Part shown: positions 1 to 49,394 of the stretch, piece by piece
Numbering within the stretch: the stretch's first letter is position 1
Layout: each line of letters begins with the position of its first letter
DNA from: Macrostomum lignano
Lineage: Eukaryota
DNA length: 64,000 nt
Assembly: GCA_002269645.1 (NCBI GenBank)
Contig: NIVC01002707.1
Coordinates: forward strand, 1-64,000
Reading direction: 5' to 3'
The notes under the pieces: model-generated
Seen by the model: the letters and a program-made list of their open reading frames with translations, nothing else
Databases searched by the model: none
Told to the model about the DNA's origin: nothing
Position numbers and translations under genes: made by a program

Positions 1-2609
1 GCAGGCAGCAACCACTCAACATTGCTCGTGTTCATGAACTTAAACACGAAAGAGATCGTTCGAGGTTCTTTGCCTGACATCTTCAAGTCAGCTGACAAAG
101 CGGAACTTGAGTCATGTGGCGGTACTCACCACTAAAGCAACCTGACAATAAGAAAGTAGAAAAGACACCGGATGAAAATTGTGAGAAGACAGAAGCGGAC
201 GAAAGTCGGCAGCGAGTGAAGCCGACTTGAAATCGAAGGCCATCGAGCTACTTCAGCAAGCTGAAGAAGTTTCTGCTAGCTCCTGTCTCATTGATCATGA
301 GGGAAACATCGTTGCTATTGTAAACGCAACAAAATCAGCTGTAGAAGGAGGGCAGAACAACTCAATACTTTCTTCGTTACATTCTCCATCTCTCAAAGCC
401 TCAAGCCCATTTGTATTGTGGACCTTCAGGAAAGCTTCGATATAAAGTACAGTAAAAATTTCGTAAGCCCAAGTCGTCGTCGAATGACTTTCCTTCTGAA
501 GAGAAAGTCCAGATTATACGGTCAAAAAAGCGTTCTTCGTGGTCTGCTGTACGACTGTGACGAAAAGCGCGCTGTTGGGATGACAATATCACCTGAGCAA
601 GACAAGTTCAAAAAGGCTGCATCAAGTTTTGGTGACGGAACGCAGGCTAAATTTACCGAAGACGAGCGACTGCTAGTTACGTCTGGTTCTAAGGTGCTTC
701 TACTTGTGTGGTCCGTGCAAACTGGCGAACTTTTGGAAGGAATCTCCCTGGGAACGGCCGAAAGCTTTCTTTGTGGCCAGCCGAAAGGCACGGACTTCTT
801 CACTATCTGTCATTTTCCTGACGAGTCGGCTGGCGACTCTGACGAGCAAATGTTCATCATGACTAAGGTGTACAATCTGAAACACTTCACGACAAGCTTA
901 GTCACCACAGCGAAGAGGATGCACTGCTCCCCATGTATACTCAGGTCAAGCCGTGTAAGAATGCGACAGGACTCACCGATTGTCACACGGTGGACATTCG
1001 CACTAATGAGGCTCTGATTTCATTGAACACTCGGACACTGGTGGTTAAGAAGTCCTCTTCACGCGACTCGAAAGAAGACGATCAGGTAGAGACGCTCAGG
1101 CTGTCGGATAAACTCCCATTATTGAGCTTCGCCGCGATCCGAAAGCTCCTTTTTCTGTTGGCATCTCAGTGATCAGCAACCAGCTGGTAGAAAAAGTTTT
1201 TGGTAGCACATCAAAGGAGGAACTCCTTCGAAGTCGTAAGTCCAAATCAGTTGGAGGGGTCGAGTTCAAATTTCACGTTGACGCAGAAAACGAATCAAGT
1301 GACAAAGAAATGGAACTACAGGCTTCACTGTGTATCTCAAAGAACAACATCTTCGCCCAGACTCCGATTTCGCATGGATCAAATTCTCTAGAATTAGGAT
1401 TTCTTGATGAATCTCGACAGTGCTTAATTTTACTTAAGTGCCACGTTCAGTACAGCTTCAAAGAGAGTTTTGTCTCACTTGTCCATCTCCCCACAATGGA
1501 GAGCGTGGTATTCAAGTTTACGAAAAATAATCATCTAGACAGCGGCGATGATAGCTCAGACCGACTCTCACAAGATTTTATCGAGCGGTTTTCAGAGGTC
1601 ATCCATGGCGGTGAACAAGAGCTGACGGAAGCGGCTAAGAAAGCGAAGGAAGAAAAGTTTCTAAAAAAGCGATTGAATAATCGCAATGACCTTGTCGACA
1701 TTCAGTTCCTGCCAGAGAAGTGCACGCTCAACCTGGCCTTCAGCCAACACCTCAAAGCGTCCGAGGAGATTCGCGTCGGCGTCGGAGTTCCTCCGATTTG
1801 GCTCGGCGCGGTTGTGCGCCTCGACTACAGCGACGTGGAGAAAGGAAATCCGACCGGAGAGATGCAGTTCCAGCACTCCATCGGCAAAGTGTTCGACATG
1901 GGACCCGCAGTGGCCTTCCTCCACGACAACCAGCACCTGGTCAACTACAAGCTTCAGATTGTGGACTACATGAAAGGCGAAGTGATGCGCTGTCTCAGTC
2001 AGGACGAGGACTTGTACTTTGTTAGACTGCAGGCCACGCCAGACTGCAGCCTGCTTGTTGGCCAGGTGTACTTTCCCGCCTACGAGGTGGAGTTCGCCGT
2101 ATTCGATGACGAATCCATGAACAGTTCGGACCTGTTCGCAATTGTTCCACCTCGAGGCTTGCAGGTAAGATTAGCAACGATTGTTATTGGGAATGGCAAA
2201 TCTTTTAATGCTTACGCTTATAAGAATCCGATCTAAAGATGCCTTTTCTCAATGACTGCGTTTAATTTCTGCACTCCAGGTCTATGTAATCAGTGATGGA
2301 CGCCGCGTTGCAAACTACCTGTTTGAGTCGGATCCTTTCGGACTCTGCTTGGTTGGGGAAGATGGTCGGGACCTGCTGGTGCTGACGCATAACGCACCAA
2401 TCATGCTGTTTGAGCTTCACGACCCGCAACCGCTAGTTGCTGCTGATGGAGCTGCCCAGATGCACTCGATGAAGGCGATCGATGCAACGGCGAATGTAGA
2501 CTCGAGTGTAGGTTCGCCGGCGAAAGCACCTGGTCCAAGACCGGAATACCTGGACATGCTGAGTGAGATTCAAGGGGTTGTTGATTACATCTTAATACGT
2601 GGTAGTTAA
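1..2609 (+). CDS. 3' part of a NACHT/propeller (NWD-like) paralog, copy A; runs off the left edge; five -1 frameshifts in the first ~1.13 kb
   Basis: ORF pieces (frame 1 from base 1, then 114, 227, 418, 933, 1169) align in order with the continuous ORF 20009..22702(-), e.g. [29 protein letters not shown] and [19 protein letters not shown]. Intron 2165-2279 (CAG|gtaag...ccag|GTC) is at the same position as in the paralog. Last exon 2280-2609 ([19 protein letters not shown]...). Confidence 0.8.
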
Positions 2610-3356: not shown

Positions 3357-3992
3357 GAATAGAGGTTAGGGCAAACAGAAGAAACAGGAACATGTATCCT
3401 CTGCTGCAGAGTTCCAGCTTATAAGACCACAACTTCATTTAACATGTTTCGTCTATGGTAATTTCAGACTGTTCCGCTTAACTTTTCGTTCCAGACGATT
3501 AGTCTATGGCCATTATCTGGCTTGCGCCAAGTGGAAAATGCCTATGACACAAATCCCTAGAATCACTCAGTGAACAATTCCCGTCTGGGAAGTTGTGTCC
3601 TAGCCATTTTGAATTGGTTTTTGGACGAAACTAGACACAATTCCACTATCGAGAGTTCACGATTCACACACAACTGCCATAGCGTCGAGGCCGGTAGGCC
3701 GAGACGCGGTAAGGCAGTTGTGTGTGAATCGTGACCTCTTGATAATCATACATTGTGCCTTCAGATTCCTTCATTCCTTCCCAGAGAGTGGTGTCTTCAG
3801 GGTCCTTCCCACATTGGTGTCCCCAAAGTCCTTCCCACAGTGGTGTCTTCTGGGTCCTTCTCCCAGAGTATTGTCTTCAGAGTCCTGCTCAGAAGGCGGT
3901 GTTTCCAGCCTCCTCAGAGAGCGGTGTCTTGAGAGTCTTTACCCTATGGAACACGTTGAGCACTACAAAATCCCCCCATTTTCTCATTCCAG

Positions 3993-4117
3993 AGCCAGCA
4001 CTGGCCAGCTCAATGGCCGAGGTAGCGAACGCGAGGCCCGTGGACCCGATCGAGTTCCTGGCGCAGTGCCTGCTGCGCTGCAAGGCGCAGTGCGACAGCC
4101 AGCAGCCAGATATCTGA
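3993..4117 (+). CDS. terminal exon encoding a Dpy-30 dimerisation motif (DYDC-like)
   Basis: Acceptor ttctcattccag| followed by EPALASSMAEVANARPVDPIEFLAQCLL, which matches the Dpy-30 motif (DYDC1-type AEVARVRPVDPIEYLA). Upstream exon(s) unresolved; candidate donor at 3708/3709. Confidence 0.65.
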
Positions 4118-4919: not shown

Positions 4920-5570
4920 TAACAGTTCCCAAACTGTTGGCCATGTTCCCAAACTGTTGGACATGTTCCCAAACTGTTGGACATGTTCCCAAACTGTTGG
5001 ACATGTTCCCAAACTGTTGGACATGTTCCCAAACTGTTGGACATGTTCCCAAACTGTTGGACATGTTCCCAAACTGTTGGACATGTTCCCAAACTGTTGG
5101 ACATGTTCCCAAACTGTTGGACATGTTCCCAAACTGTTGGACATGTTCCCAAACTGTTGGACATGTTCCCAAACTGTTGAACGTGCCCCCAAACTGTTGA
5201 AGATATCCCCAAATTGTTGTAAATGTTCGCCAGCTGTTAGACATGTTCCCAAACTGTTAGACATGTTCCTAAACTGTTTAACATGTTCCTGAACTGTTGT
5301 ACGTGTTCCCAAACTGTTAGACATGTTCCTGAACTGTTGTACGTGTTCCCAAACTGTTAGACATGTTCCCAAACTGTTAGACATGTTCCCAAACTGTTAG
5401 ACATGTTCCCAAACTGTTAGACATGTTCCCAAACTGTTAGACATGTCCCCAAACTGTTGGACATGTTCCCAAACTGTTAGACATGTTCCCAAACTGCTGT
5501 TAGACATGTTCCCAAACTGTTGGACATGTTCCCAAACTGTTAGACATGTTCCCAAACTGTTGGAAATGTC
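4920..5570. repeat. minisatellite, 20-bp unit ACATGTTCCCAAACTGTTGG
   Basis: About 30 tandem copies, degenerate at both ends. Explains six overlapping spurious ORFs. Confidence 0.97.
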
Positions 5571-5907: not shown

Positions 5908-7487
5908 TCAGGCAGTCGCGGTCTCGCGGTAGAGACTGCACAGCCGGTCGCACTCGTCCAGAGCTTCGCTCATGTCGCCCTCGGTGATGCCCTCCTGCTG
6001 GTACAGGTGGAAGAAGGCCCTCCCGCTGGCAAACAGTTTGCGCACCTGGGTAGCTTGCTGCTCAACCAGGTTAGCTGTGGAGCTCGAGTTGACAAAGAAA
6101 GCCGCCGAGACGGTCTCGCCGCGCGGCGGAATGTCGCAGACGCCGGTTGAGAAGGCGTGAGTCAGCCAATTGGGAAAGACGGCCTCGCGACGCACCCGAA
6201 GGTCGGTGAGCGCTGAGTCCAGCGCCTGGATTGGCACCCGGCCGCGGAAGATGCCGGCCGCTGAGAGGATGCGGCCCGCCGAGGGGTCGCAGGCCGCCAG
6301 CTGCGCCTCCGGGCTCAGCATCCGAGCAGAGAGCTCACGGACCGAGTTGCCGTGCGTGGAGCCCCAGCCCAGCGAGGACAACAGGAAGTGCAGCCTGCGG
6401 AAACGAGTCCGACACTGTTAATCAGCCTTTGAGCACCTTGAAAGCACCTTAATCTTTAGTAACCTGTAGAATTTCAGCTTTCGATGTCTAATATACTTAG
6501 ATTAGCGAGAGACGAACGCGGAGAGAATTTCTTTATTGGAGCTAAGTGAAACTTCGAGCGTAAAACCGAGGGGGAGAAGAGCTGACGAAGCGTACAAGCG
6601 TGGATTCAGAAACCAATCCTTACCTTTAAGGAGTTCGAATTACACCTATACAATCTTAACTACAATGCCAGCTAATGCTAATATTGAGTCTCCATTCTGA
6701 ACTCAAATTTCTCTCAAACGAGTTCTCACCTGGGCAGGGGCACCAGCGCGCTGGCCAGTTTGCCCGGACTGAGGTTTAGCTGTCCAGGAAACCGGACGCA
6801 GGCAGTCAGGCCCAGCATCATGTTGGCCGCTGTCCGGTTCACGTCTTCAATGTCCGGCTTTGGACGTTCGCTGGCCGCGCGCAGGCCGGCCAAGTCCCAG
6901 CAGTAGGTGATCTCGGCACTGCTGGCCAGGTGCGGCGCGCACAGGGTGGCGTTGTAAGCCTCGATGATGGCCGGCTGGCCGGGGAACAGGCTGAAGGTGT
7001 GCACAGGGACGCCGGACAGTCCCTGCTGGAGCAGGCGGCTGGTCAGGCCGGAGCCGGTGCCGCCGCCCAGGCTGTGGACGATGTGAACCGCGCGGACTCG
7101 ATCGCTCAGCTCGAGCTGTCGCTGAACGGAGGTCAGAATTGACTCGGCCATCGCCTTGGCTCCGGGTGAGTCGTAGCCGCGCCCGTATGTGCTGGCGGCC
7201 TCCCCGGTGCCTTCAATGAGGCTGTCCGGCCGGAACAGGCCGGTGCAGGAGCTGGCGGACAGGGCGGCCACGCTGGTGGAGTCCAGATCGGCGAACACAG
7301 CTCTGGGCGAGTGCCGGCCCGACTGCGACTCCGCAAAGTTCACGCCGATCTTTTCAAGCTGCAACGGGCTGGAGCCAACAAACCGGCCCTGACAGTCCAG
7401 GCCGTGCTCGTCGGCCAGGCTCTCCCAGTACTTGAGCCCGACGCAGACGCCGCACTGACCAATGTGGATGGTGATAATCTCCTGCAT
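5908..7487 (-). CDS. divergent beta-like tubulin (2 exons: 7487-6730, 6394-5908; ~414 aa)
   Basis: MQEIITIHIGQCG, PRAVFADL, the GGGTGSG signature, RFPGQLN and VCDIPPRG are present. The phase-2 intron (CCC AG|gtgag...ttccgcag|G CTG CAC TTC) rebuilds the conserved PRLHF motif. Confidence 0.92.
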
Positions 7488-8769: not shown

Positions 8770-11700
8770 ATGGCGTCCAGAGTCAGTGAGCTGCGCCTGC
8801 GACTGGACTCCGAGCCAGCGGACGAAGTCGATCAGGATGAGCCGGACGACAGCGGCTGCTTGGAGTTCCCGCAGCAGCAGCCGCCGACACCACCGCCTCC
8901 GCCGAGGCCAACCAGAGCGGAGCAGCAGCCGCCGCCGCCAGCGCAGTCGCAGTCTGCCACAAAGAAACCTGACGCACCAACGGCTGAGCTGTCGTTTCAG
9001 GAACAGCTGCGCCGCATTGCTTTCGGCGGCAGCCGGCAGAAGCGGCCAACTGCCAGCGGCGGCTCGATCGAAAAGCTGCCGGCGGCGGCGGCGGCTGCAG
9101 CGCCAGTCGAGAAGGCGACAGGCAAAGCTTCAGTTGCGTCGTCGGCGATTGGCGACGAAGATCAGCGACAGCCGTCAACGCTTGACCTGATCGCCAGAGT
9201 GCGGAGCAGCTTGACGACTTATCAGGTACCTGCTGATGCTGTCTCACCGTTCTTTGTAGCCATCCAATCCGCATAATATAGGCCTGGAAGCCGATACCGT
9301 TTCATAGAAACGTACTCTATTTCCTGGAAAACTATTCCTTTTCCAGGAAAACTATTCCATTTCTTGGAAACCTGATTAATTTCCTATTAATCTATTCCAT
9401 TTTCTAGAAATTAATTTAGAAAACCAATTCCATTTCCTGGAAACCTGTTCCATTTCCTGGAAACCTATTCCATTTCCTGGAAACGTATTCCATTTCCTGG
9501 AAACATATTCCATTTCCTGGAAACGTATTCCATTTCCTGGAAACGTATTTCATTTCCTGGAAACCTATTCCATTTCCTGGAAACCTATTCCATTTCCTGG
9601 AAACCTATTCCATTTCCTGGAAACCTATTCCATTTCCTGGAAACCTATTCCATTTCCTGGAAACCTATTCCATTTCCTGGAAACCTATTCCATTTCCTGG
9701 AAACCCATTCCATTTCCTGGAAACCCATTCCATTTCCTGGAAACCATTCCATTTCCTGGAAACCTATTCCATTTCCTGGAAACCTATTCTTGTTTCCAGG
9801 AAATCTATTCTCTTTCCGGAAAACCTATTCTGTTTCCTGGAAACCTTTCATATTTCCTCGAAAGCGATCGAAATCTACTCTCCTACCCGAAAAGCTTTAC
9901 TCTACTTCAAGGAAACCTTCTCCACAGTTTTCTGGAGCAAAAGCACGGCGGAGATTGCATTTTTTCCTTTTTTGCTTACGCAAAGATTTTACAACTTTTT
10001 GAGGACTTTTTTGACTCCTATAGAATCAAAACTTTACGGATAATAGAAATGTATATTATTCGAGCATCTATTGTTAACAGATCTATAAATCGAAATAACA
10101 GGCTTAAAATAGCCACTGCCGCAAATAAGATCCCTGTCCGCTCCGCAGACTGCAGCACCTCCGCCGCCAGCCGCTGTCGAGAATGACGTGGATGACTACA
10201 ATCGCTACTATTACCGAGAGGCGGCGGCCTCCGCCCCGGTGCCCGCTTATCCTGCAGACGACGCCGCCTACGATTATCGCGGCGGGGACGGCAGCAACGG
10301 CTTCAATGATGAGGCAGTCCTCAGAGACGGCGGAATCTTCTTCGAGGACGATCCGTGCTACGATCCGGGCGTCGGATCCCAGGACGACTTCGATGATGTC
10401 GGCTTGCAGCGCCGGCAGCAGCAGCCGGGCTCCATGCTGCGGGAGGTCCGGGCCCGCTGGGCGGCACAGCGCGAGGAAGAGGTCGAACGGCTCAAGGAGA
10501 TGTCGAACCAGCGGCAGCTGGAGACTCAACTGAGAGAGGAGTGCCGACAACTCAATGAAAATGTGAGCACCTAGTGAGACCGGGAGTGAGGGGTAGCTTT
10601 AAAAATGAGTTCACACTAATCAAGCGACATGGATAAGAGATCAGTTCCAGCTGGGTCACGCGCTGCAGGTTCTCAATACTCAAGTTTTAATAGTTAACAT
10701 GTATGCCGAGTCCAATGTCATAATTCTATACCTTGATCCCAATCCCGATTCCAATCCCAATTCCAGTACTGATCCTAAATCCTAAATCCCAATGTCAGTT
10801 CTGATCCCAAATCCCGATCTCAGTTCTGATCCCTAATCCCAAATCCCAATCTCAGTACTGATCCCAAATCCCATTTCCAGCTGTACGAGAAGCAGCGAGA
10901 GGTGCAGGCCATGGCCGACCAGCTCGACTTGCTGAGGCGTCTAAACGAGCAAACCAAGAGCGACCTTATGGCTGCCGTGGAGAAAGGCGACTTTCAGGTA
11001 GGGTCTGAGTCTGCTTGGGCTTTTATATATGCAGCTTTGAGGGCTTTGATTTTACGAGCAAAAGCAGGCAGTAGCCACCATTCGAAATCCCAGGTTCAAA
11101 GGTTCACAAGATCAAAGTGTCACAAGATCAAAGTGTCACAAGATCAAAGTGTCACAAGATCAAAGTGTCACAAGATCAAAGTGTCACAAGATCAAAGTGT
11201 CACAAGATCAAAGTGTCACAAGATCAAAGTGTCACAAGATCAAAGTGTCACAAGATCAAAGTGTCACAAGATCCAAGTGTCACAAGATCCACGTGTCACA
11301 AGATCCAAGTGTCACAAGATCAAAGTGTCACAAGATCAAAGTGTCACAAGATCAAAGTGTCACAAGATTTCACAAGATCAATTTTTCAAAGCCGCGCAAC
11401 GAAAATCCGCCAAATTCTTTATTTCAGGCGAGCGAGCTGAAGCTGGTGATGGAGGAGGACCGGCAGGTGCTCGAGGCCACCCGCCGGGAGAACCTGGAGC
11501 TCAAATCCAAGATGGAATGCGACGAGCTGGAGATGCGCGGCCTGGAGGGCCGCCTGGCCGGCCTGGAGCGGCAGCTGCAGTCGATGCAGTCGGAGAACGG
11601 TCGCCTCGCCCAGCAGATGCGGGAGACGTCGCTCAGCGTCCAGGCCGGCGCGATGGAGCGTCAGGAGGCTGGACGGTTGGGACAGCAGCTGGTGGCGCTG

Positions 11701-14154
11701 GAGACCGAGCTGCTGCGGCTCCGCAGGGAGGTGGCCAATCAGCATCTGGTCGGCAGTCAGCAGGCAGCGGCCGTCGCTGCCGCCGCCGTCAATGTCGCCG
11801 CGCCCACGAAGCTGCCGACGACCACGGCGACCGCATCGACAATGACGACGCCAAGAGTGGCCGCGGTTGAGCAGCCAGCATGCAGAACCACTGCGGGGCC
11901 GAGCAGGCTGCAGCGGGCGCTAGAGGTTTGAGAATGTGTTGAATTTCTGTTTTAATAACTTGCTGGGGAACTTTTCTGACCCTGTCTAACAGTTACAGAT
12001 ACTGTCTAACAGTTGCCTATCCTGTCTAACAGTTACAGATACTGTCTAACAGTTACAGATCCTGTCTAACAGTTGCCGATTCTGTCTAACAGTTACAGAT
12101 ACTGTCTAACAGTTGCCGATTCTGTCTAACAGTTGCCGATTCTGTCTAACAGTGTTAAGATACTGTCTAACATGTCTTACACATTTTGATTTTCTGTAAC
12201 AGGTTCAAGTCCTATTTATCTAACATTTTTTAACAATGCTACTATTTGGCAGCTAATTTAAGTTGAATCTTATTAAAAACATATTACTAATTGTTTAAAA
12301 TAATGTCGGAGCTACGCAATTTTAGATGAGCATTACCGGAACCTCGGCGAAGCCATCGACTGCTGCCTATGAACCGGCGCCCCCTGCGACACAGCCACCG
12401 CCGCCACCGCCGCGTCAGAAGCAGCAGCCGCAGCCCACAACGCCGCCTCCGGCGCCCCGGCTGCAGCGCAGCGCCGAGGACGAGCAAATCTCCGACAGGG
12501 TGCGCGGCTTCCTGACGCGGATGCAGACGCCGCCAGCAACGCCAAAACCGCAGCAGCAGCAGCAGCAACAGCAGCCGATGTCGGAGTCCCGCCGGCGGCA
12601 ACTGCGGCCGGTGCCAATTCAGCGGCTTCAGCAATTGCAGCAGCAGAAGCAGCAGCAGCAGCAGACACAACAGTCGGTTTTTCAAAGTCGACAACAGCCG
12701 CAGATTCGCCGACCAATTCGAACCGGAAGTTTTGGAGCCGGCGGCAGTGGCGGCAGCATTGTCGAACGACTTCGGGCCGAATTTCGCGACGCTCATTCGT
12801 CGGAAATTAAGCGACTCGCCGCCGCGTCGACAGCTGCGTCGCCGTCGGTGCCGGCGATGGCTTCGTCAACCGCGGCGCCACAAAATCCGCAGCTCTCGTG
12901 GCGGCCGCCGGCAGCTCAGCAGCTGCAGCAGCCAAGGCGCAGCGCAGCCTCGTCCATGACGAACATCCTGCAAGGTCTCGAGGCCATGAACTCGTTCCGC
13001 AGCGGCGCCGGCGCTGCCGTCGGGAGCGCGACATCGAGCGCCGTCCCCAGACTGTCTCTGGAGTCGGGGGCTGGCGGCGAGACTGGGAGGTGAGGCCGCT
13101 GCGTTAGCCAGCCATCTGTCACTCTAATAATCTGTCCCTCTGATATCTGTCACCTGTCACTCAGGTAATCTGTCACTCCAATGATCTTTCACTCTAGTAT
13201 TCTGTCACTCCAATGATCCGTCACTCCAATGATCTGTCACTCCAATGATCTGTCACTCTAATGATCTGTCACTCCAATGATCTGTCACTCCAATGATCTG
13301 TCACTCCAATGATCTGTCACTCCAATGATCTGTCACTCTAATGATCTGTCACTCCAATGATCTGTCACTCCAATGATCTGTCACTCCAATGATCTGTCAC
13401 TCCAATGATCTGTCACTCTAATGATCTGTCACTCTTATGATCTGTCACTCCAATGATCTGTCACTCCAATGATCTGTCACTCCAATGATCTGTCACTCCA
13501 ATGATCTGTCACTCCAATGATCTGTCACTCCAATGATCTGTCACTCCAATGATCTGTCACTCTAATGATCTGTCACTCCAATGATCTGTCACTCCAATGA
13601 TCTGTCACTCCAATGATCTGTCACTCCAATGATCTGTCACTCCAATGATCTGTCACTCCAATGATCTGTCACTCCAATGATCTGTCACTCCAATGATCTG
13701 TCACTCCAATGATCTGTCACTCCAATGATCCGTCACTCCAATGATCTGTCACTCCAATGATCTGTCACTCTAATGATCTGTCACTCCAATGATCTGTCAC
13801 TCCAATGATCTGTCACTCCAATGATCTGTCACTCCAATGATCTGTCACTCTAATGATCTGTCACTCCAATGATCTGTCACTCCAATGATCTGTCACTCTA
13901 ATGATCTGTCACTCCAATGATCTGTCACTCCAATGATCTGTCACTCCAATGATCTGTCACTCCAATGATCTGTCACTCCAATGATCTGTCACTCTAATGA
14001 TCTGTCACTCCAATGATATGTCACTGCTCGCAGAAGTGACACCCGCTGGAATCATCTTCGCGACTACGCCGAGGCTCGGGAGCTGACCGCCAGCGCTAGA
14101 AAGTACGCCGACTCGTTGGTGACGAAGTACCTGAGCCAGCAGGGGGCCAGCTGA
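8770..14154 (+). CDS. uncharacterised coiled-coil / low-complexity protein, 6 exons (8770-9225, 10149-10562, 10881-10997, 11428-11925, 12326-13089, 14034-14154)
   Basis: All junctions are GT-AG and phase-consistent (0,0,0,0,2). Exons 2-4 have heptad-like E/Q/R/L-rich sequence. Stop TGA at 14152-14154. No family recognised. Confidence 0.8.
9420..9850. repeat. intronic minisatellite, 20-bp unit CCTATTCCATTTCCTGGAAA
   Basis: About 19 copies in intron 1 of the 8770-14154 gene. Confidence 0.95.
10735..10875. repeat. degenerate intronic ATCCCAAATCCC-type repeat
   Basis: Imperfect repeats of ATCCC(T/A)AAT in intron 2, running up to the acceptor at 10880. Confidence 0.7.
11105..11375. repeat. intronic minisatellite, 16-bp unit ATCAAAGTGTCACAAG
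   Basis: About 16 copies in intron 3; the 16-aa periodicity in the ORF track equals 3 x 16 nt. Confidence 0.95.
11985..12170. repeat. intronic minisatellite, ~20-bp unit CTGTCTAACAGTTACAGATA
   Basis: About 9 copies with variants in intron 4. Confidence 0.92.
13115..14025. repeat. intronic minisatellite, 16-bp unit TCCAATGATCTGTCAC
   Basis: About 55 copies filling intron 5 to within ~10 nt of the acceptor at 14033. Confidence 0.97.
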
Positions 14155-14629: not shown

Positions 14630-15990
14630 CACTCTGTATGTATGTCTCACTTGGTCACTCTGTAAGACTCTCTCAGTCACTCTGTATGACTCTCTCAGTC
14701 ACTCTGTATGACTCTCTCAGTCACTCTGTATGACTCTCTCAGTCACTCTGTAAGACTCATTTGGTTACTCTGTATGACTCTCTCAGTCACTCTGTATGAC
14801 TCTCTCAGTCACTCTGTATGACTCTCTCAGTCACTCTGTAAGACTCACTTGGTCACTCTGTATGACTCTCTCAGTCACTCTGTATGACTCACTTGGTCAC
14901 TCTGCATGAGTCTCTCAGTCACTCTGCATGAGTCTCTCAGTCACTCTGTATGACTCTCTCAGTCACTCTGTAAGACTCACTTGGTCACTCTGTATGACTC
15001 TCTCAGTCACTCTGTATGACTCACTTGGTTACTCTGAATGACTCTCTGAGTCACACAGTTTCACTCTCTCAGTCACTCTGTATGACTCCTCAGTCACTCT
15101 CAGTCACTCTGTATGACTCTCTCAGTCACTCTGTATGACTCTCTCAGTCACTCTGTATGACTCACTTGGTTACTCTGAATGACTCTCTCAGTCACTCTGT
15201 AAGACTCACTTGGTCACTCTGCATGAGTCTCTCAGTCACTCTGCATGAGTCTCTCAGTCACTCTGTATGACTCTCTCAGTCACTCTGTAAGACTCACTTG
15301 GTCACTCTGTATGACTCTCTCAGTCACTCTGCATGACTCTCTCAGTCACTCTGTATGACTCTCTCAGTCACTCTGCATGACTCTCTCAGTCACTCTTCTT
15401 CACTCTCTCAGTCACACTGTTTCACTCTCTCAGTCACTCTGCATGACTCACTTGGTCACTCTGTATGACTCTCTCAGTCACTCTGCATGACTCACTTGGT
15501 CACTCTGTATGACTCTCTCAGTCACTCTGCATGACTCACTTGGTCACTCTGTATGACTCTCTCAGTCACTCTGCATGACTCTCTCAGTCACTCTGCTTCA
15601 CTCTCTCAGTCACACTGTTTCACTCTCTCAGTCACTCTGCATGACTCACTTGGTCACTCTGTATGACTCTCTCAGTCACTCTGCATGACTCACTTGGTCA
15701 CTCTGTATGACTCTCTCAGTCACTCTGCATGACTCTCTCAGTCACTCTGCTTCACTCTCTCAGTCACACTGTTTCACTCTCTCAGTCACTCTGCATGACT
15801 CACTTGGTCACTCTCTATGAATCTCTCAGTCACTCTGCTTCACTCTCTCAGTCACACTGTTTCACTCTCTCAGTCACTCTGCATGACTCACTTGGTCACT
15901 CTCTATGAATCTCTCAGTCACTCTGCTTCACTCTCTCAGTCACTCTGTTTCACTCTCTCAGTCACTCTGTTTCACTCCCTTCAGTCACTC
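14630..15990. repeat. complex minisatellite, ~22-bp unit CTCTCTCAGTCACTCTGTATGA with variants
   Basis: About 60 units with recurring variants (CTCACTTGGT..., GCTTCA, GTTTCA). Confidence 0.95.
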
Positions 15991-16564
15991 TGTTTGATAC
16001 TCAACTCGAAAAATATCAGATGAAACTGTTCTGATTCGATGAAAAGTCAAACAAACAGCGACACTTGTTGAGCAGCAGGCCCACAGTGTTCTCAATGAAG
16101 ATTGCAATACGAAAGGCAAGAAGTGTTGGAGACCAGCAGAGCAGGCCAGGGGACAATTCTGATCCCATCTCAGCACCGAGAGCAACAGAGATCATATGGG
16201 CAGAATGAACTGCAGCTGGCTCTAAATTAGGCATCAGATCAAAAACGCTCAGGGCAGGCTCTGTCTCTCTCTCTCTCTCTCTCCACTATTAGAAAAAAAC
16301 TCAGAGCAATGCGATTGTCTAATCTGCAATACTTCTGCAGCCGGTCCAATTCTAAAAAATTTAAGCTGCAATTTGCGTCGCTTTTGGATCGATGGAGAGG
16401 GTCCAGCATCCCGTGGCTCTGGACAGAGAGGCGGAAACCGGGGCGGGCGATGGCTGGGGTTGGAAGGGGGATAGAGATGCAGCAGTCAGTCCGCGGCTAA
16501 GCGTATTAAAGCAGCGATTTCTACCTGAGACCTAGGCAACAAGAGTTGTCTGAAGCAGAGGAAC

Positions 16565-16947: not shown

Positions 16948-17004
16948 TGGGCACGGAAACGGATGAAGCTTAGACTGCACCGCGTGTGAGTTTTTCTGCA
17001 GTGT

Positions 17005-17590
17005 AAACTACCGACTACCTAGTGTAGAATACCAAATACTAGGGTAAACTACCGACTAGCTAGTGTAAAATACCAAATACTAGGGTAAACTACCGACTAG
17101 CTAGTGTAGAATACCAAATACTAGGGTAAACTACCGACTAGCTAGTGTAGAATACCAAATACTAGGGTAAACTACCGACTAGCTAGTGTAGAATACCAAA
17201 TACTAGGGTAAACTACCGACTATCTAGTGTAGAATACCAAATACTAGGGTAAACTACCGACTAGCTAGTGTAGAATACCAAATACTAGGGTAAACTACCG
17301 ACTAGCTAGTGTAGAATACCAAATACTAGGGTAAACTACCGACTATCTAGTGTAGAATACCAAATACTAGGGTAAACTACCGACTAGCTAGTGTAGAATA
17401 CCAAATACTAGGGTAAACTACCGACTAGCTAGTGTAGAATACCAAATACTAGGGTAAACTACCGACTAGCTAGTGTAGAATACCAAATACTAGGGTAAAC
17501 TACCGACTAGCTAGTGTAGAATACCAAATACTAGGGTAAACTACCGATTAGCTAGAGTAGGATACCAAATACTAGGGTAGACTACCGATT
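17005..17590. repeat. minisatellite, 41-bp unit CTAGTGTAGAATACCAAATACTAGGGTAAACTACCGACTAG
   Basis: About 14 copies; period 41 (17101 to 17142). Confidence 0.96.
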
Positions 17591-18479
17591 AGGGATGCCT
17601 ACTTCGATGACGGTAGTAAATAGCTTTTAGACAATACAATACATTTGCGTACTACTTAAGATGTGTACATCCAATCTATTGGAATCAGTCGTGCCGCAGA
17701 TTGTGGATAAATTACACTTGATATTAAGACACTCATGTCTAATATTTTTAAAGCAGTCTACTTGAATATTTACTACATCTTTTGCGCGCATATTCCAATA
17801 TTTAAGGCAAAGCTTTATTAAACTTTTGAAGCTATTTAAAACTATCATTAGAATAGAGCTAGTATATTGCTGGGCACGCCTACTTTTCTATCTATACTCT
17901 GTCGATAGGAAGATATTCATTGATATCCATATAGAAAATGTCAATTTATCTTACTCTGGGATACCTGCCAACTCCAACATGTACTGCCTTACTGCCTAGA
18001 TGTCTTCCCTCTCAGATCCTGTTTCCTGACTTTGGCGGCAAGTTTTACTATACTGCTACTGTAATCCATTCTTCTCTTTGTCTCCGTTTGCTGTGAATTT
18101 GTACTATCTGTATGCTTTGAGACCTCTCCATTTTTGCTGTATTTTTGCAATTAATGATAAATATAAATGCTTACGTACCAAGCAGACATTTAAAAGCGAG
18201 TAATTCTGATGTTCTTCGATAGTAATTTAGCAATTTAGTAATTTAGTAGTTTGATAGTAATGCGGCTTTGTTCTGCGCATATGAAGTGTCCTGCCAACTG
18301 GGGTATTGCAGACAGTGCAACAGGTCGCTTGGACAGGTCAGGCCAGAGTCTATCGTATGAGCCAAGATCTATTGGCCATTGTCTACATGTATGTTCCTTG
18401 CTTCAATGTCTATTTATGGTCTACAACCTGTGCTCTATGGTCCAGGGTCTATAGGCTACGGTCTATATGTTCCCCCACC

Positions 18480-18910
18480 GGTTCAAGGTCTATAAGCTAC
18501 GGTCTATGTTCCATGGTTCAAGGTCTATAAGCTACGGTCTATGGTCCTTGGTCCAAGTTCCATGAGCTACGGCCTGTGTTCCATGGTTTTTAAGGTCCAT
18601 GAGCTACGGTCTATGTTCCAAGGTTTAAGGTCCATGAGCTACGGCCTGTGTTTCATGGTTCAAGGTCCATGAGCTACGGCCTGTGTTCCATGGTTCAAGT
18701 TCCATGAGCTAGGGTCTGTGTTCCATGGTTCAAGGTCCATGAGCTACGGCCTGTGTTTCATGGTTCAAGGTCCATGAGCTACGGCCTGTGTTCCATGGTT
18801 CAAGGTCCATGAGCTACGGCCTGTGTTCCATGGTTCAAGGTCCATGAGCTACGGCCTGTGTTCCATGGTTCAAGGTCCATGAGCTACGGTCTCTGTTCCA
18901 TGGTCTATGG
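18480..18910. repeat. minisatellite, 35-bp unit TTCCATGGTTCAAGGTCCATGAGCTACGGCCTGTG
   Basis: About 12 copies; period 35 (18791 to 18826); degenerate flanks. Confidence 0.95.
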
Positions 18911-19782: not shown

Positions 19783-22700
19783 TCAGAGGCAGGTACAGCA
19801 TCGGCGGGGTTGCGATTCCGTCGCATGGGACTCAGTTTTTGACGAATCAGGGGTCGACAGCTCAGATGAGGTTGAGCCGGGAGAGTTTGATTCAGTTGGG
19901 TCAAGCAGCTCAAACAGCATAATGGGCGCATTGTGCGTGAGAACCAGAAGGTCCCGCCCGGCCTCACCGATCAGGCAGAAGCCAACGGGGTCTGACTCAA
20001 ACAGGTAGTTAGCAACGCGACAACCGTCTGATATACGGTACACCTGAGCAAGATCGGGCAATGAGGTGCAAAACTGTGAAGATCCGAACTCTACACCAGT
20101 ATCCGGAATTATAAGTAGTAAAAACTACAAATTTACTAAATCTCACTTGCAAGCCTCGAGGTGGAATAACTGCGAACATGTCCGAATTGTTCATGGATTC
20201 GTCATCGAATACGGCGAACTCCACCTCGTAGGCGGGAAAGTACACCTGGCCAACAAGCAGGCTGCAGTCTGGCGTGGCCTGCAGTCTGACAAAGTACAAG
20301 TCCTCGTCCTGACTGAGACAGCGGATCACTTCGCCTTTCATGTAGTCCACAATCTGAAGCTTGTAGTTGACCAGGTGCTGGTTGTCGTGGAGGAAGGCCA
20401 CTGCGGGTCCCATGTCGAACACTTTGCCGATGGAGTGCTGGAACTGGATCTCGCTGGTCGGAGCTCCTTTCTCCACGTCGCTGTAGTCGAGGCGCACAAC
20501 CGCGCCGAGCCAAATCGGAGGAACTCCGACGCCGACGCGAATCTCCTCGGACGCTTTGAGGTGTTGGCTGAAGGCCAGGTTGAGCGTACACTTCTCTGGC
20601 AGGAACTGAATGTCGACGAGGTCGTTTCTTTTTGACATCCGCTTGTTAATGAAGTCCGCTATCATTTCTTGTCGGTTTTGACTTGTAAAGTCCTGCCGCG
20701 TTTCCAAATTTCCATCCTCTGCTTCATCGGCACGACTGGTAGCTTCAGATGGAAATATTATGTGGTTAAATTTTTTCATGAAGCTTTTTGATAGTACTTT
20801 GTCAAAAGAGTCAGTACTTAGTCCAAATTGGTCGCTCAAATCGGAAAGATTGTACCTGCACCCTCTGAGAGTTGTCAGTCTGATGACTGATAAATAGCTC
20901 TCTTTAATGTCCTGCAGTGTAAGCCTAATTGTAATTAGCAACTTCTTCGCTTCGTTTATAAAGACAATGTCTAGTATGTTGTCTTCAGACAAAATCGGCG
21001 ATTGAAGGAACTTGGTATTCATCATATTAGCTTTTGCTGTCGTCTGAAGGGCGCAGCGTTGCTGTTCCCTTGTGGGATCCTCATTGGGATGCTCTGAAGC
21101 AACAGTAAATCGAACTCCAAATACATCTTTGCTCTCATTCTTAGACTTCGGTTGTTCGTCATTGGCACCGAATAACGACTCAATCAGATCAGAATCGCGT
21201 ATAACAATCGTCGTGACCTCTCTTTGTCCGGGTCGGCAACGAACTTCAATTTGGGGCTTAGTGGAAAGGACGCACTTTTCTTCATCTTGATCAAGCGTAT
21301 TCGAAGACTTTTCGCGAATGTTTATACTAATTGTCTCCTTACCTATGATATCGACTTCGTATTTGTTAGTTAGCGATACAGCGCAACGTGCTTGCCTTCT
21401 CTGGGTAAATTTTGGAAGCATGACGGCAGACTCCTCTCTAATTGACGCATCGTGAAATGACTTAGTATTGTACACCTTAGCCATGATGTACATTCGCTCG
21501 TCAGTGTCACCGGCCGACTCATCGGGAAAATGGCAGATGGTAAAAAAATCGGTACCCCTTGGCTGACCGGATAAAAAACTCTCAGCCGATCCCATTCGAA
21601 TGCCTCTGATGAGTTCACCTGATTCAACTGACCAAACTAGAAGCAGAACTTTAGTGCCAGAAGTAAATAGGAGCTTTTCATCTTCCGTAAATTTTGCTTG
21701 AGTTCCGTCACCAAATGCCGAAACAGCAGATTTAAACTCGCTGTTTGCCTGAGTAATCCTCAGTGGAGTCGCCTTTCGCGCTGCAACATCGAATATGACT
21801 CCCCGAATTGGTTCCTGTTGCGCGTCAGTCAATTTGGCTCGCTTTTTCAAAAGAAAGGCTAGCCTCTCTCTGGAGGCGCTTGCAAAGTTTTGCGAATATT
21901 TCACTTCGAGAACAGTATTCAAATCTATTATGTGAACAGGTTTGAGAGACCCACAAGTAGAAAAAACGACGAAAAACGTTCGCGACTCAACATCTCTATT
22001 ATTAGTCTCTCCAGTGGCAGTTATCATTGCGACAATATCTCCTTTGGGGCCAAAAAGGCAAGCATTTGCTCGAATTTTTTCGGCACTTAATAGTAGATTT
22101 AAAGAGCTCGAGTTGTCCGACACAGCTTTTGCAGAGCTTGACCATGAGTCCATGCGCCACATACGTTTAAGATCAGCTTTGTCCATGGACTGGAAATTTT
22201 CAGAAAAATATAACCGAGAAGTCACTCTAGTCACCAAATTCATAACCACCAACAATGAAGACGCCTTATCATTTATGTCCAAACAGAAGCACAACAGATT
22301 GCTTTTGCCGTCGAGGTTTTGGGTGCCAATATTTGAAGTTCCACTTGTCTCTTCGTCATAAAGAGTAACGAACTTCTTCTCTCCGATTGACAGCAGTCTA
22401 AGAGTGCTTGTTCCCGTTGAGTCACTCTTTCCCTTGCAACAAAGCACATAGTCCTTTGTCACATATTCTACGTCATCAGATGACACACTCCATGATGGGT
22501 CAGAGTCATCAGTTTCGTCACCCTGCCGTTCATGAAGTCGACTCGAACGAGATCTTGCGACTTCTGCGCCTCTTCCTCTCCAGACATCATCTTCTTCATC
22601 ATCCCGTCTACGTCCAGCTTCTCCATGATGCTGTCTGGAATCTCTCCAGCGTTGAGCGATTCCATCATGTCTCGCAGCTCTTGCGGCACATCCTTGTTGC

Positions 22701-25700
22701 ACGCTTCGTATTCTTCGATCTCCTCTTGGATCTTCTTCCGACCCATGTTAAGGACAAGCGCTTGTCTGTCGTCCTCGGTGACACCGGCATTCTTCGAGCG
22801 CATCGATAGCACGTGCATTACGCAGTCGTCTGGGATGTATCCAGTCGACATGTACTTCATGCTGAGGAACAGGTTGTAGTCGGAGCTGAACCGTTTGATC
22901 TCATTTCCCTCGATGTCGTACCAGGTGACTTCGTTGTTGATGAGTGAGAAGGACACCAGCTGACCGTTGGGCATGACCAGTCCCATTCCGAGTCCGAGAT
23001 CAAAGCTGGAGTAGAGAACTCCAGACCCGGAGTCGAAGCACTGCACCTTCGGGATGAGGCAGCAGTTGCTGAGAGCCTGTTTCGACTGGCGACACTGGTT
23101 GAGCAGCAGCTTCACTCGAGGACAGTCCTTCTCGTACATGATGAGCCGACCGATGAGATCAACGCTCAGATTGACAGGGTCGTATACGAGACTCTGAGCG
23201 GAGAGTCGGATTGCATTGTACACGAGCTCGGCCTCTTTGATATACTCGACACCGAGCTTCTGCGGGAGGTCGAGGTCTCTTAGCAGCAGGTACCGAGACG
23301 TGCCCTTCAGCTTGTTGAACATGAAGTCGTAGTCAAACACAATGTAGTCGTAGAACTCGTTCACTCGACCGGACTTGATGAGGTGCCACGGCAGCTCGTT
23401 CAGCTTTCGCAGGTTGTACTGAGCAGTGCCGTCCTCATCTTTGCGGAGCACGAATGGCTGCTCGGGAACGGCTCGGTCCTCCATTGAGAACTCGGGCAGG
23501 TTCTGGAGTGAGAACGAATGCATAAACGGCTCAGTAAGTCGGTTCAGAGAACAGATCAATTTCAGTGCTCATCACTTACGAGCTTCTTGCGCAGATAGGC
23601 TGGGTACACGAACTTCTTTCTCCTGCCGCTCCACAGACCCAAGAAGTAGTCTGCCATGATGGAGTGAATGTCCCGTCTGGTCTTTTCGTCCGACAAGAAG
23701 TACTCCTGAGCCACCTCGATGAACTGTCGGTGGTACCAGAACACTACCCGGATGTTGTCCGCCTCTCTCTCGACCAGGTAAGAGCCAATGTCGTGACGCA
23801 GTCGAGCCCAGCAGATCGGCGGGATGCGGATGAAGGGCGGCAGGTGATGCTGAAACACGTCAATGAGGACGGCGTCATCCAGACTGAGCAGATCCTCCAG
23901 CTCCGACTCTGACAGTCCGTTTCTCGATGCAGTGATGAATGCCAGGGCGTGAGAGGTCTGGAAAAGCAAATGAGCAGAAAGAGCCATTCTGACAGAGAGA
24001 GATAAGTGGCGGATAGTTCTGGGTTATTCTCACTAGCCTGGGCTAATGTAACTAACACGAAGTACTTACAAAAAGCCTGCCGTGCTTCAACTCGAGTTTC
24101 TCGAACAGCTGAAATATTGCCTGACGAACGGTGTAGCGCAGAGACGACTCATCTACCTGTTGGTAAGAGCGCCATCTCAGAACCTCGTGGTACAGCAGGT
24201 GAACATAGATTGGCAGTGAGCACTTGGAGAATGCCTGCTCACCAGAGCCCATTGCTGCTCGTTCAGAGTGCGACCTTGTTCGCTGAGCAGAGCCGACAAA
24301 ATGCTGGTGCACAGACTGGTCTCCAGTGGCGTCACCTCCACGTAGAAGTCTGGGTTCGGCAGCTTCCCTTTGAATGTCTTCAGCAAGTCGAACATGTTGG
24401 GCAGAGTGGACACAACCATCTTCACGTTGGCAGGCAATGGCGTCCGCACCCACGTCAGATGGTAGGCACCGTCAGAGCTGTCCAGCTGATCAACACTGTC
24501 AAGGAACACCAAGATTCTCCTGAACTGGCCCATGCGTTCGAGCATGGAGTAGAAGGTGTTCAAGATCTCCTTGAAGTCGTCGAGTGACTCGCACTTTTCC
24601 TGGTCGTCCTCGTTGCCGAACACAGCGAGCTGACGGCACAGGTACTTGAGTGTCTGTCGAATGCTCGACGTACCGGGACTGGTGCCGAGGAATCGCAACA
24701 GCACGATGGCATCTTTGGAATCGGACTCTGGCAACCAGCTTCGCACCAGACTGGCGGCCTTGCCAAGAAGAGAGGTCTTGCCGCTGCCCGAGTCGCCGTA
24801 CACCACCAGAGGCTCCGTTGTGTTGCTCGCTTGCACATAAGCCTTCACCTTGTCGATGATCTCTTGCCGACCCTGGAACTTCTTCACGTAGTTGACGCAT
24901 GCAGTCGAGTGCTGCAGCACCTCCGAGTAGAGGTCGTCCGATCGGAGCCGCATGCTCTCCCGCACGGATTCGGCCACGAGGCGCTTCACATTATCGCAGT
25001 AGTCGCTGCCGAACTTTTCCAGATAGTCTTTGTGGCTACTCATGCCCACACCCTCAGCGTCATTGGTCCATTTTAGTGAGTAAGTGAATGAATTGGATCC
25101 CACCATTCGAGTCAGAACGTGTCTGTTCAACTCCTTGACCATCGCGTTCACAGCTTCATCAAGAACCTTTACTGCCTCGCCATCTTCGTTCACAGAGTCG
25201 GTCAGGTCGATGAACTTGAACATCTTTCCTCGAGAGAAGTCGCGCTGAGACTCCAGATCAGAGAATTCTCTCACGAATGCGAGAGCCTGAGCCAACTTTT
25301 GCGGAGGTTTTGACAATATTCCGCTGATCACCTCAATCTCGGTGACAGAGGCCGTGAACTTCTTCATTGTCGCGTGCGAGATCAAAGTCTTTTGAAGACA
25401 CAACTCGGCACCTCTCTTCATGAGTCCGATGATGGAGTCTTGGACAGCTTCCCACCGCTGTCGAGCAGCTTTCAAGAGCTCCTTGTCCGCCTAGAACAAT
25501 GAATTACGAGATTAGAGGTTATTAAATTTATCCTGTTGCAAACTCTGAAAAACAAGCGCTGCAATAATCGTAAAAAACCACACTTACCGCCTCTGCTAGA
25601 GTTGCAATCGGTCTCAGGACACAGATTGGTGGCTTGTTGTTCTCGTCGATCGTGTACCACTCGTGTAGACACGAGACGTCGCGTCCGTCCTCTTTCAACG

Positions 25701-48570: not shown

Positions 48571-49394
48571 CGTAGCACACATGATTGACATTATTTTTCA
48601 CATCGAAGCATTCACGCCAGCTTAATTCTTTTTATGTCGAGCAGCCAAGAGTGGTTCTACGTTGTCAATAGTTTTTATTTTTGTGATTTAGCTTCAGCAA
48701 CTATCAGAGCATTATATAAAGATGAAAGGCTATGTTATACAAATCTTCCATTATTCCTCATTATTTTGTGTTATCACAGAGAGCTGTGATTACTCAATCG
48801 CAACGGATTGATGACTTTAATTGTTGTGGCTAAATGTCATCAATGCTCTTATATTTCACGGTCGGTGCGGGGCTCATCTCTATTGGGTACGGTTTAAATA
48901 TGATATAAGTGTGCATTAATATTCTGCTTACCCGTTTTGTCTCCGCAATCTGCACTAATCCCGCGTTTCTATGAAACCAGTCGCATCTTTTTTGTCTGTT
49001 TAGTCGCTGTCAAGTCTGATGCGCAGACTGTGATTGATTGATTAATTCAGCTTTTGCGTTTAGTGAAATCATGCGATCCACTCCCTGGTCTACACACCTA
49101 GCACCTCATGGTGTAATGTGTTGGGTTAATGCGCTAACTGTATCCATATAAATCTTTTAATCTTGACTTGCTCTGACATTATATTATTCTGTTTCCTTTG
49201 TTTATTGATGTTTATTTATTGAGCGTTTATTATATATGTGTGAGTTGTTCTGTCTGGGCCCTGGGTTGCAGATTGGCTGGTAGCGCAGTGACATGGCGCT
49301 TGTTTGTAGTAAAAAAAAATTGAATTGAAGATTTTTTTGTTTTGTTTCCAGTTTGTTGTGATTAAAGTGTCCTTGCCTTAGCCTTCTTTCATGT

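Follow-up and report, generated by a model that had tools for sequence, protein, structure and literature searches.

How have two genes that are saturated for synonymous change come to share 485 nucleotides that are almost the same? The question arises in the first 64 kb of one Macrostomum lignano contig, NIVC01002707.1 of the Mlig_3_7 assembly; this 64-kb stretch is the window referred to below, and its position 1 is position 1 of the contig. When the window was compared with itself by BLASTN, positions 1688–2172 of the plus strand, in what is here called gene A, were found to match positions 20623–20139 of the minus strand, in gene B; the alignment is ungapped, 485 nt long and 96.9% identical, with 15 mismatches. 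Across this tract, position p of gene A corresponds to position 22311 − p of gene B. The initial annotation had put the difference at about 15 of some 480 nt (~97%) and had remarked on identical stretches of more than 100 bp; both observations hold, the mismatch-free runs being 123, 122 and 100 nt long. The exonic part of the tract comprises 477 nt with 14 differences, and no third copy occurs within the 64-kb window.

The limits of the tract are well defined. At the 5′ edge, 10 mismatches in the 24 nt ahead of position 1688 give way to only 2 in the following 36, while the 3′ edge falls about 8 nt inside the intron. The tract had been described as sharp-edged and lying within one exon, of which the first part stands for the 5′ edge and the second fails by those 8 nt. 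A maximum-chi-square scan placed the low-divergence segment at 1696–2162 with a chi2 of 147, compared with a maximum of 22 in 200 permutations.

The clearest contrast is seen at synonymous sites. Within the tract, 143 of the 146 codons that specify the same residue in both genes are identical, compared with 33 of 104 in the conserved [12 protein letters not shown] block, 22 of 55 just upstream and 16 of 41 in the last exon. Accordingly, NG86 gives a dS of 0.034 for the tract and saturation (pS 0.83–0.89) for every coding segment on both sides of it, a distribution that is clearly not uniform; the earlier statement that the conserved block differs at most synonymous sites is thus borne out. The tract also carries 8 amino-acid changes, for a dN/dS of about 0.8. 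Protein identity between the genes in the flanks is low, as had been claimed, although its measured range of 29–59% by segment is wider than the 35–40% given. The introns that follow the tract, 115 nt in gene A (2165–2279, plus strand, GT..AG) and 103 nt in gene B (20044–20146, minus strand), are essentially unalignable, with 5 of 300 shuffles scoring equally well, and were correctly called unrelated.

The two genes are convergent (tail-to-tail), as the initial annotation recognized in stating that they face each other 17 kb apart; the tract copies are separated by 17,966 bp and the 3′ ends of the genes by 15.7–17.2 kb. Gene A is cut by the start of the contig, and its 5′ part lies beyond it. 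What can be read begins with a middle region (1–1687, plus strand) that is saturated for dS against gene B and that contains a conserved block 96% identical to P0062, a protein of the same species. Reading positions 1–1115 requires five frame changes, and the frame is open from 1115 on. The tract copy (1688–2172, plus strand) consists of 477 nt of exon, or 159 codons ending at 2164, and the first 8 nt of the intron, with a GC3 of 0.74. The penultimate coding exon follows at 2280–2562 (plus strand), its ends taken from the annotated model, P0001, which presents gene A merely as a 420-residue fragment. Over its first 49 codons the encoded protein shares 86% of residues with gene B, but the synonymous sites are saturated (dN 0.10, pS 0.83). 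The terminal exon (3993–4117, plus strand) encodes a Dpy-30-type motif, an ancestral tail in the family that is also C-terminal in the relatives P0065, P0066, P0068, P0070 and P0077.

Gene B is a DUF4062-NACHT-wHTH (NWD1-like) gene that lacks annotation altogether. Its 5′ block (22388–26076, minus strand) covers DUF4062, NACHT and an NWD1-type winged helix and extends into the C-terminal region. DUF4062 (PF13271, E 1.5e-9) was matched at 25528–26268 and NACHT (PF05729, E 7e-10), with the Walker A motif GDSGSGKTS, at 24177–25475, both on the minus strand; the winged helix (PF25469) was detected in gene B at E 2.4e-8 and in P0062 at E 1.3e-10. P0062 also has a NACHT domain. The description of the pair as two NACHT paralogs is therefore secure for gene B, but within the window the domain is seen in that gene alone. 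Downstream of the 5′ block lies a middle region (20624–22387, minus strand) with an open reading frame deeply diverged from the A-type genes, and then the tract copy (20139–20623, minus strand; exon end 20147). The last exon (19783–20043, minus strand) has a conserved 49-codon start, followed by an unrelated tail and a stop codon at 19785–19783, and a search of the window downstream of gene B revealed no Dpy-30 exon. Relative to P0062 and P0091, a second protein of this type, gene B shows single-G deletions at about 24237 and about 22503. The five frame changes in A and the two deletions in B raised the possibility that these are pseudogenes, but they occur at the end of the contig or in sequence present in several copies, which short-read polishing was unable to correct.

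The C-terminal region of gene B is conserved solely among flatworm relatives. No Pfam family, WD40 repeats included, was matched in its C-terminal 852 residues, nor in the tract together with the last exon, and an AlphaFold2 model of the C-terminal 354 residues from a two-sequence alignment had a pLDDT of 31. The best named match of gene B is a flatworm NWD1 (42%). Members of this NWD1-like family fall into about five subfamilies, each with about three subgenome copies, and do not amount to a large receptor expansion.

Comparison with full-length A-type proteins of M. lignano changes the picture considerably. P0062 and P0091 come from UniRef, with no accession listed, and may be chimeric gene models; over their first ~1083 residues they agree with gene B at about 99.6% (about 4 differences). 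In one exon, gene B and P0062 agree at 333 of 333 residues. P0062 then passes from B-identical to A-type sequence, with identity decaying over about 40 codons, and in both proteins the switch lies about 37 codons ahead of the first base of the contig. The paralogs had been called deeply diverged apart from the tract, and this is probably wrong. Because the 5′ part of gene B is nearly identical to that of P0062 and P0091, the tract is probably one of at least two homogenised blocks, and the smaller of two. The A/B pair is thus probably a mosaic, its young part made up of the tract and a 5′ block some 3.7 kb long, its old part of a 1.8-kb middle, intron, last exon and tail. The gene A of the window, like its subgenome sisters, probably has the B-like 5′ block: the first base of the contig lies about 37 codons past the decay point, where an assembler would be expected to break off on meeting a long, near-identical inverted repeat.

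At the level of protein, to which the comparison is confined, the three sequences are also related differently in the tract and in its flanks. Within the tract, A, B and P0062 are equidistant from one another, at 95–97% protein identity (gene B versus P0062, 155/159; gene B versus gene A of the window, 150/158), and for the 8 variable residues three-way parsimony yields a star-shaped tree, with about 4–5 changes on A, 3–4 on B and 0–1 on P0062. In the flanks, A and P0062 are 96–100% identical, and gene B reaches only 59–86%. A search of annotated relatives of the tract returned only P0001, the model of gene A itself. Against the annotated-protein index, the middle region of gene B gave no match, and its N-terminal part had no close M. 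lignano relative.

Such a mosaic probably arose through interlocus (non-allelic) gene conversion between old inverted paralogs. The initial annotation had proposed ectopic gene conversion, and this is the best explanation for a block with a dS of 0.034 between saturated flanks, at a homologous, in-frame position in inverted paralogs. A length of 485 bp, identical runs of 100–123 nt and inverted copies 18 kb apart are typical of intrachromosomal conversion substrates. Protein constraint would not be sufficient to account for the synonymous identity, because the last exon has been under strong long-term purifying selection (dN 0.10) and is nevertheless synonymously saturated. We infer conversion as the process; either copy may have been the donor. 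In the proposed course of events, A and B would be old convergent paralogs of an NWD1-like STAND NTPase with DUF4062, NACHT, a winged helix and a flatworm-specific C-terminal region, and non-allelic conversion between the inverted copies would have overwritten parts of one with the other. One converted block would be the 485-bp tract; the other would be a much longer 5′ stretch containing the signalling and NACHT modules, homogenised more recently or more continuously. The ~1.8-kb middle would have been spared, together with the intron that follows the tract, the last exon and the tail, and all of these would have kept their old divergence.

The edges of the tract could then represent the limits of homology, with an indel-rich linker at the 5′ side and the unalignable intron at the 3′ side. 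Edges of this kind fit conversion that halts where homology ends, and they give no indication of the exon-segment exchange that had been offered as an alternative. Conversion mediated by cDNA was considered in view of the 3′ edge at the exon end and was rejected, since the intron is kept and the next exon is unconverted. Two counterpoints to conversion may be recorded here: the position of the 3′ edge at the exon end would be a coincidence unless homology limited the tract, and most of the gene length is young. As to timing, the nucleotide divergence of the tract is 2.9%, and the three subgenome copies differ by 1.1% in CDS and 2.2% genome-wide (PMC10733133), which fits an event near or before the recent genome duplication of the species. 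Since then, each copy of the tract would have gained a few changes, mostly non-synonymous and clustered.

Of the competing explanations, one that reverses this polarity survives best, and even so it is unlikely. Here A and B would be young inverted duplicates, and the diverged middle and 3′ end of one copy would have reached it, by conversion or recombination, from an older third paralog, or would descend from anciently diverged haplotypes captured in cis. The near-identical sequence does make up the majority of the coding length (~1083 plus 159 residues), and duplicates with at least 95% identity abound in the genome (PMC5730564). An exhaustive search nonetheless found no protein closer to the middle of gene B than the A-type genes are, the nearest being P0062 at 50–61% in that region. 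In the conserved middle block, moreover, A and B are each other's nearest relatives (59–61%, versus about 50% to the paralog P0063), as old tandem paralogs would be, and two separate imports, of the middle and of the 3′ end, would be required.

Another explanation, for which we see rather little likelihood, is reciprocal recombination, in which crossovers between the inverted blocks (inversions or a double crossover) swapped segments. P0062 and P0091 would then be true recombinants with a B-type 5′ end and an A-type 3′ end, and not every A-type gene would have a B-like 5′ end. Inverted repeats 18–22 kb apart are substrates for inversion via homologous recombination, so the spacing suits this mechanism, as does the passage of P0062 from B-identical to A-type sequence within ~40 codons. 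Old sequence is present on both sides of the tract in both genes, however, and would call for two exchanges 485 bp apart, which is operationally conversion. Furthermore, A, P0062 and P0091 all pair an A-type middle with an A-type 3′ end and give no sign of shuffling, and the point at which the contig breaks off speaks for a long repeat at the 5′ end of gene A itself.

It is very improbable that the tract in one of the genes is an artefact, namely a chimeric Canu or Pilon consensus in a highly redundant, triploid-like assembly. In favour of an artefact, subgenome chimeras make up 36% of the scaffold length of Mlig_3_7, 93% of read pairs are multi-mapping (PMC10733133), and gene A lies at a contig end and needs its five frame changes within 1.1 kb. 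A mis-join would, however, hardly produce fifteen dispersed differences at a colinear, in-frame position with two switch points 485 bp apart in unique flanks, and PacBio reads should far exceed 485 bp. Short-read polishing is unable to raise about 60% identity to 97%, and the same tract is present in A-type proteins of another annotation.

Least credible of all is nucleotide-level purifying selection, due for instance to an RNA element within the tract or to an antisense gene across it, that would have frozen the synonymous sites of the tract since the old duplication: a 189-codon antisense ORF (20066–20635) does overlap the gene B tract, but chance alone should produce long antisense ORFs in GC3-rich coding sequence, Rfam and tRNA scans found no Rfam family or tRNA in the tract, and constraint would be needed at nearly every synonymous site of 477 nt that have nevertheless taken 8 amino-acid changes.

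Base composition was also considered as a possible signature of biased gene conversion, the tract having a GC content of 57% and a GC3 of 0.75 in gene B. It was dropped as specific evidence, as unrelated genes in the window have GC3 values of 0.60–0.83: a raised GC3 is the norm for coding sequence here, and its presence in the tract does not count as evidence of biased conversion. The 5′ block of gene B (up to 22540) is similar at 0.71–0.77, and it is the low-GC3 middle region (0.26–0.56) that is the odd part, because the unrelated genes of the window share the higher values.

If it arose by conversion, the locus offers a clean, statistically unambiguous case of interlocus exchange in a STAND/NLR-like pair of a flatworm model organism; a literature search found no paper on gene conversion in M. 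lignano. The conceptual gain beyond other gene families is small, since the event is of a known kind, ordinary gene conversion. Its practical consequences are more immediate. A full NWD1-like gene is absent from the annotation, and its partner appears there only as a 420-residue fragment. Trees of the paralogs and dS dating of the family will mislead unless the tract, the 5′ block and the middle region are treated separately, and knock-out or knock-down reagents directed against the tract or the 5′ block would affect both genes and their subgenome copies. A far more speculative reading, to which we attach very little weight, is that the near-identical blocks are maintained inverted recombination substrates bracketing a diverged “sensor” cassette of an NLR-like pair. 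Were it true, the two genes could trade sensor cassettes, or the Dpy-30 docking tail, through crossovers or conversions between the blocks, and the germline would shuffle cassettes for a flatworm receptor of the innate-immunity type. In another version of this reading, the old segments would be ancient haplotypes, balanced and captured in cis.

Among the closest known systems, animal NWD1 is similar in domain content, as gene B and P0062 have a NACHT domain and an NWD1-type winged helix, and gene B has DUF4062. The M. lignano proteins differ in a C-terminal half without detectable WD40 repeats and, outside gene B, in ending with a Dpy-30-type motif. In Podospora anserina, the NACHT-WD (nwd) genes het-d/e/r undergo concerted evolution of their repeats, and these too are NACHT STAND NTPases whose C-terminal region exchanges sequence among paralogs. 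There, similar WD40 units are shuffled within and between loci, whereas in M. lignano the exchanged piece is a single, non-repeated segment of 159 codons with no Pfam WD40 match.

The geometry of the pair recalls the palindromes of primate Y chromosomes, large inverted repeats in which gene conversion proceeds from arm to arm. Both are inverted on one chromosome, with near-identical blocks attributed to intrachromosomal conversion and a spacer that is retained. In M. lignano, unlike the palindromes, deeply diverged stretches interrupt the blocks, which are placed at a distance from the centre of symmetry, and one arm of the long block is on the contig (gene B, 22388–26076), the other being deduced from P0062, P0091 and the contig break. 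Finally, mosaics produced by interlocus conversion are known from NLR and plant R-gene clusters, from human globin genes and from the micro-conversions of CYP21A2/CYP21A1P. The A/B pair resembles them in having a patch of a few hundred base pairs with synonymous identity between diverged paralogs, sharp edges, patchy differences and conflict among trees. It differs from them in that the genes are convergent rather than tandem, NWD1-like rather than NB-ARC/LRR, and housed in the genome of a neopolyploid flatworm.

Self-comparison of the window by BLASTN, read after exclusion of its many minisatellite arrays, leaves a single strong dispersed match between two convergent NWD1-like paralogs, gene A (+) and gene B (-). 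The match pairs 1688-2172(+) in gene A with 20623-20139(-) in gene B, over 485 nt with 15 mismatches and no gaps (96.9% identity), such that gene A position p corresponds to gene B position 22311-p. The two tracts are inverted and lie 18 kb apart, and their longest perfect runs measure 123, 122, and 100 nt. In a global alignment, sliding windows give 58-60 identities per 60 nt in the tract versus approximately 45-60% with many gaps upstream, and identity collapses again in the intron on the 3′ side. The 5′ edge is sharp (10 mismatches over the 24 nt preceding 1688, then 2 over the following 36 nt), while the 3′ edge falls about 8 nt inside the intron, the tract exon ending at 2164(+) in gene A (CAG/GTAAGA) and at 20147(-) in gene B (CAA/GTGAGA). 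By a maximum-chi-square scan, the low-divergence segment spans 1696-2162 (chi-square 147; the highest value in 200 permutations was 22). Clearly, the tract is real and significant, and the initial annotation, which described a near-identical, inverted, sharp-edged tract with identical stretches of more than 100 bp in two facing genes, was correct wherever it could be measured.

Protein constraint does not explain this similarity. By Nei-Gojobori estimates, dS between the two genes is 0.034 in the tract (dN 0.026), where 143 of 146 codons for shared residues are identical. In the conserved protein block upstream, pS rises to 0.89 (dN 0.35; 33 of 104 codons identical), in agreement with the synonymous difference initially reported there, and in the upstream linker it is 0.84 (22/55). 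In the last exon, the protein is strongly conserved (86%; dN 0.10) and the silent sites are nonetheless saturated, with a pS of 0.83 and 16 of 41 identical codons over the first 49 codons. The introns following the tract (115 and 103 nt) are barely more similar than shuffled sequence (5/300 shuffles), in keeping with their initial description as unrelated.

Within the tract, the 14 exon differences comprise 4 synonymous and 10 non-synonymous nucleotide changes that alter 8 residues, giving a dN/dS of about 0.8. The differences are clustered (8/14 spacings of 10 nt or less; P about 0.007), with patches at 1847-1864 and 2124-2144, and one site is three-state, reading N, A, and T in gene A, gene B, and P0062, a full-length A-type protein discussed below. 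Relaxed constraint once the exchange had occurred could account for this pattern, as could a discontinuous conversion tract with patches left unconverted, or a variable surface loop.

A database search with the tract protein finds a single entry, the 420-aa PAA55783.1 of Macrostomum lignano (BOX15_Mlig023669g3), whose gene lies at 1310-4117 of contig NIVC01002707.1 (GCA_002269645.1). Its model consists of the tract exon, 2280-2562(+), and a terminal exon, 3993-4117(+), encoding a Dpy-30-type motif. Since window position 1 is contig position 1, gene A is truncated by the contig start, and only this 420-residue 3′ fragment of it is annotated. The last annotated intron also contains a near-perfect hairpin (3647-3744(+); arms 3656-3678 and 3713-3735, 22/23 complementary) with an RNA minimum free energy of -73.6 kcal/mol (z = -13.2), no Rfam match, and no further copies in the window. 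Gene B, from about 26076 to 19783(-), looks like a complete, unannotated NWD1-like gene with DUF4062, a NACHT domain with its Walker motif, and an NWD1-type winged helix; its closest named relative is a flatworm NWD1 (42%). Database searches with its tract, middle, and N-terminal parts never returned it from the deposited annotation, and no Pfam family was recognised in its C-terminal 850 residues, tract included. An exhaustive search found the tract region and following exon to be 30-54% conserved across flatworm NWD1-like proteins, most of which end, like gene A, in a Dpy-30-type motif. M. lignano itself has about five NWD1-like subfamilies, each typically represented by three copies in the genome (g1-g3), in line with the three subgenome copies reported for this assembly (PMC10733133).

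Between the paralogs lies a tubulin gene (5908-7487(-)), and neighbouring genes encode a DUF4517 protein (27844-28308(-)) and the signal-recognition-particle receptor alpha subunit (44176-45747(+)). Long minisatellite arrays are also numerous in the window (periods of 16-44 nt), at 4925-5569, 9283-9863, 13168-14025, 14639-15997, 17003-17592, and 18480-18904 in the first half, and at 45975-46427, 49389-50722, 54369-56862 (92 units of a 27-mer, 98% identical), 57401-58102, and 60906-61903 in the second. A 35-mer array lies directly 3′ of gene B, and related 20-mers occur in two inverted arrays (5235-5556 and 11973-12172).

The exhaustive search also returned two UniRef entries from M. lignano that belong to one cluster, P0062 (1901 aa) and P0091 (1964 aa), each with NACHT, the winged helix, and the Dpy-30 motif. 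Over their C-terminal 780 residues they are A-type, with identities to gene A of 96% (conserved block), 97% (tract), and 100% (next exon). The N-terminal ~1083 residues, however, differ from gene B by only about four substitutions (I/M, V/A, F/I, V/T), one exon matching at 333/333, so the 5′ part of P0062 is not simply gene B of this contig. Past residue ~1083, the next 75 residues are 87% identical to gene B, and identity thereafter is 24-61%. In P0062 numbering the contig begins at residue 1121, about 37 codons past the onset of this decay, and a long near-identical inverted repeat would be expected to halt an assembler at its edge, at just such a point. The simplest account of these comparisons is that A-type genes, including gene A, share with gene B a homogenised 5′ block (~3.7 kb genomic; 22388-26076(-) in gene B) as well as the 485-bp tract, with old sequence (the 1.8-kb middle, the intron, the last exon, and the tail) between and after them. 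The initial framing of one patch in an otherwise deeply diverged pair thus calls for revision: the gene pair is probably a mosaic with at least two homogenised blocks, of which the tract is the smaller one. Relative to gene A, P0062 and P0091, which come from the other annotation, are also missing about 125 coding residues (1240-1620(+)) that are homologous to gene B, and carry a short or lysine-rich segment instead; the linker immediately upstream of the tract is thus structurally unstable between subgenome copies or isoforms.

The protein relationships change along the genes. In the tract, gene A, gene B, and P0062 form a star (95-97% mutual identity), while in the flanks A lies close to P0062 and both are far from B. 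Tract nucleotide divergence between A and B is 2.9%, versus 1.1% in coding sequence and 2.2% overall between subgenome copies (PMC10733133), placing the exchange at about the age of the genome duplication or somewhat earlier. Judging from its 0.4% protein difference, the 5′ block appears to have been homogenised at least as recently as the tract.

Gene conversion, already proposed in the initial annotation for the single patch, is the best and a fairly probable explanation of a gap-free, in-frame, colinear block of near-zero dS between saturated flanks. Non-reciprocal homologous repair between the inverted copies could have produced both this block and the second one, seen at the protein level. 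Tract edges would lie where homology gives out: a linker with a 16-codon indel, which also differs structurally between A and P0062/P0091, adjoins the tract upstream, and an unalignable intron follows it downstream. Conversion requires pre-existing similarity, so an old duplication has probably been followed by repeated homogenisation of the blocks, with the remainder drifting beyond its reach. The opposite polarity, in which old segments were imported into a recently duplicated pair, is improbable, as the exhaustive search found no donor and A and B are mutual nearest relatives in the conserved middle block. Reciprocal exchange or inversion between the genes is very improbable: it requires a pair of crossovers separated by 485 bp, in effect a conversion, and A, P0062, and P0091 all retain an A-type middle and 3′ end. 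An assembly artefact might be suspected in an assembly known to be redundant and partly chimeric (PMC5730564, PMC10733133), but it is unlikely given 15 private differences, two switch points within unique flanks, and PacBio reads much longer than the tract. Nucleotide-level selection is not supported, since Rfam and tRNA scans of the tract were empty and eight residue changes are tolerated.

Base composition is compatible with biased conversion where exchange persists, without being specific to it. The tract has 57% GC and a GC3 of 0.75, versus 0.26-0.56 in the adjacent middle region, and the step in GC3 coincides with the step in identity in both genes. A GC-rich tract was considered as specific evidence of biased conversion and rejected, because unrelated genes in the window are equally GC3-rich (0.60-0.83). 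With the 5′ block of gene B at 0.71-0.77, it is the tract that has normal coding composition and the middle region of both genes that is anomalous. These low-GC3 regions (1-1687(+) and 20624-22500(-)) are near the composition of non-coding DNA in the window (37-45% GC), every other coding segment examined there having a GC3 of 0.60-0.83; the gene B frame nevertheless stays open for 2.3 kb.

Gene A requires five frame changes within 1-1115(+), at the contig end, and is open from 1115 to its stop, while gene B lacks a single G at ~24237 and ~22503(-); P0062 and P0091 are intact at the corresponding sites. No Dpy-30 exon was found for gene B in the 64-kb window. These losses may reflect real decay, and the frame losses could just as well be long-read indels left uncorrected at a contig end or within multi-copy sequence. 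The assembly was polished with Pilon (PMC5730564), and residual indels are plausible in multi-copy sequence because multi-mapping reads hamper such polishing (PMC10733133).

Of modest general interest, the mosaic is useful for annotating the NWD1-like family and for dating or targeting its members. It represents a new instance of a well-known process, gene conversion, in a genome known for pervasive near-identical duplicates.
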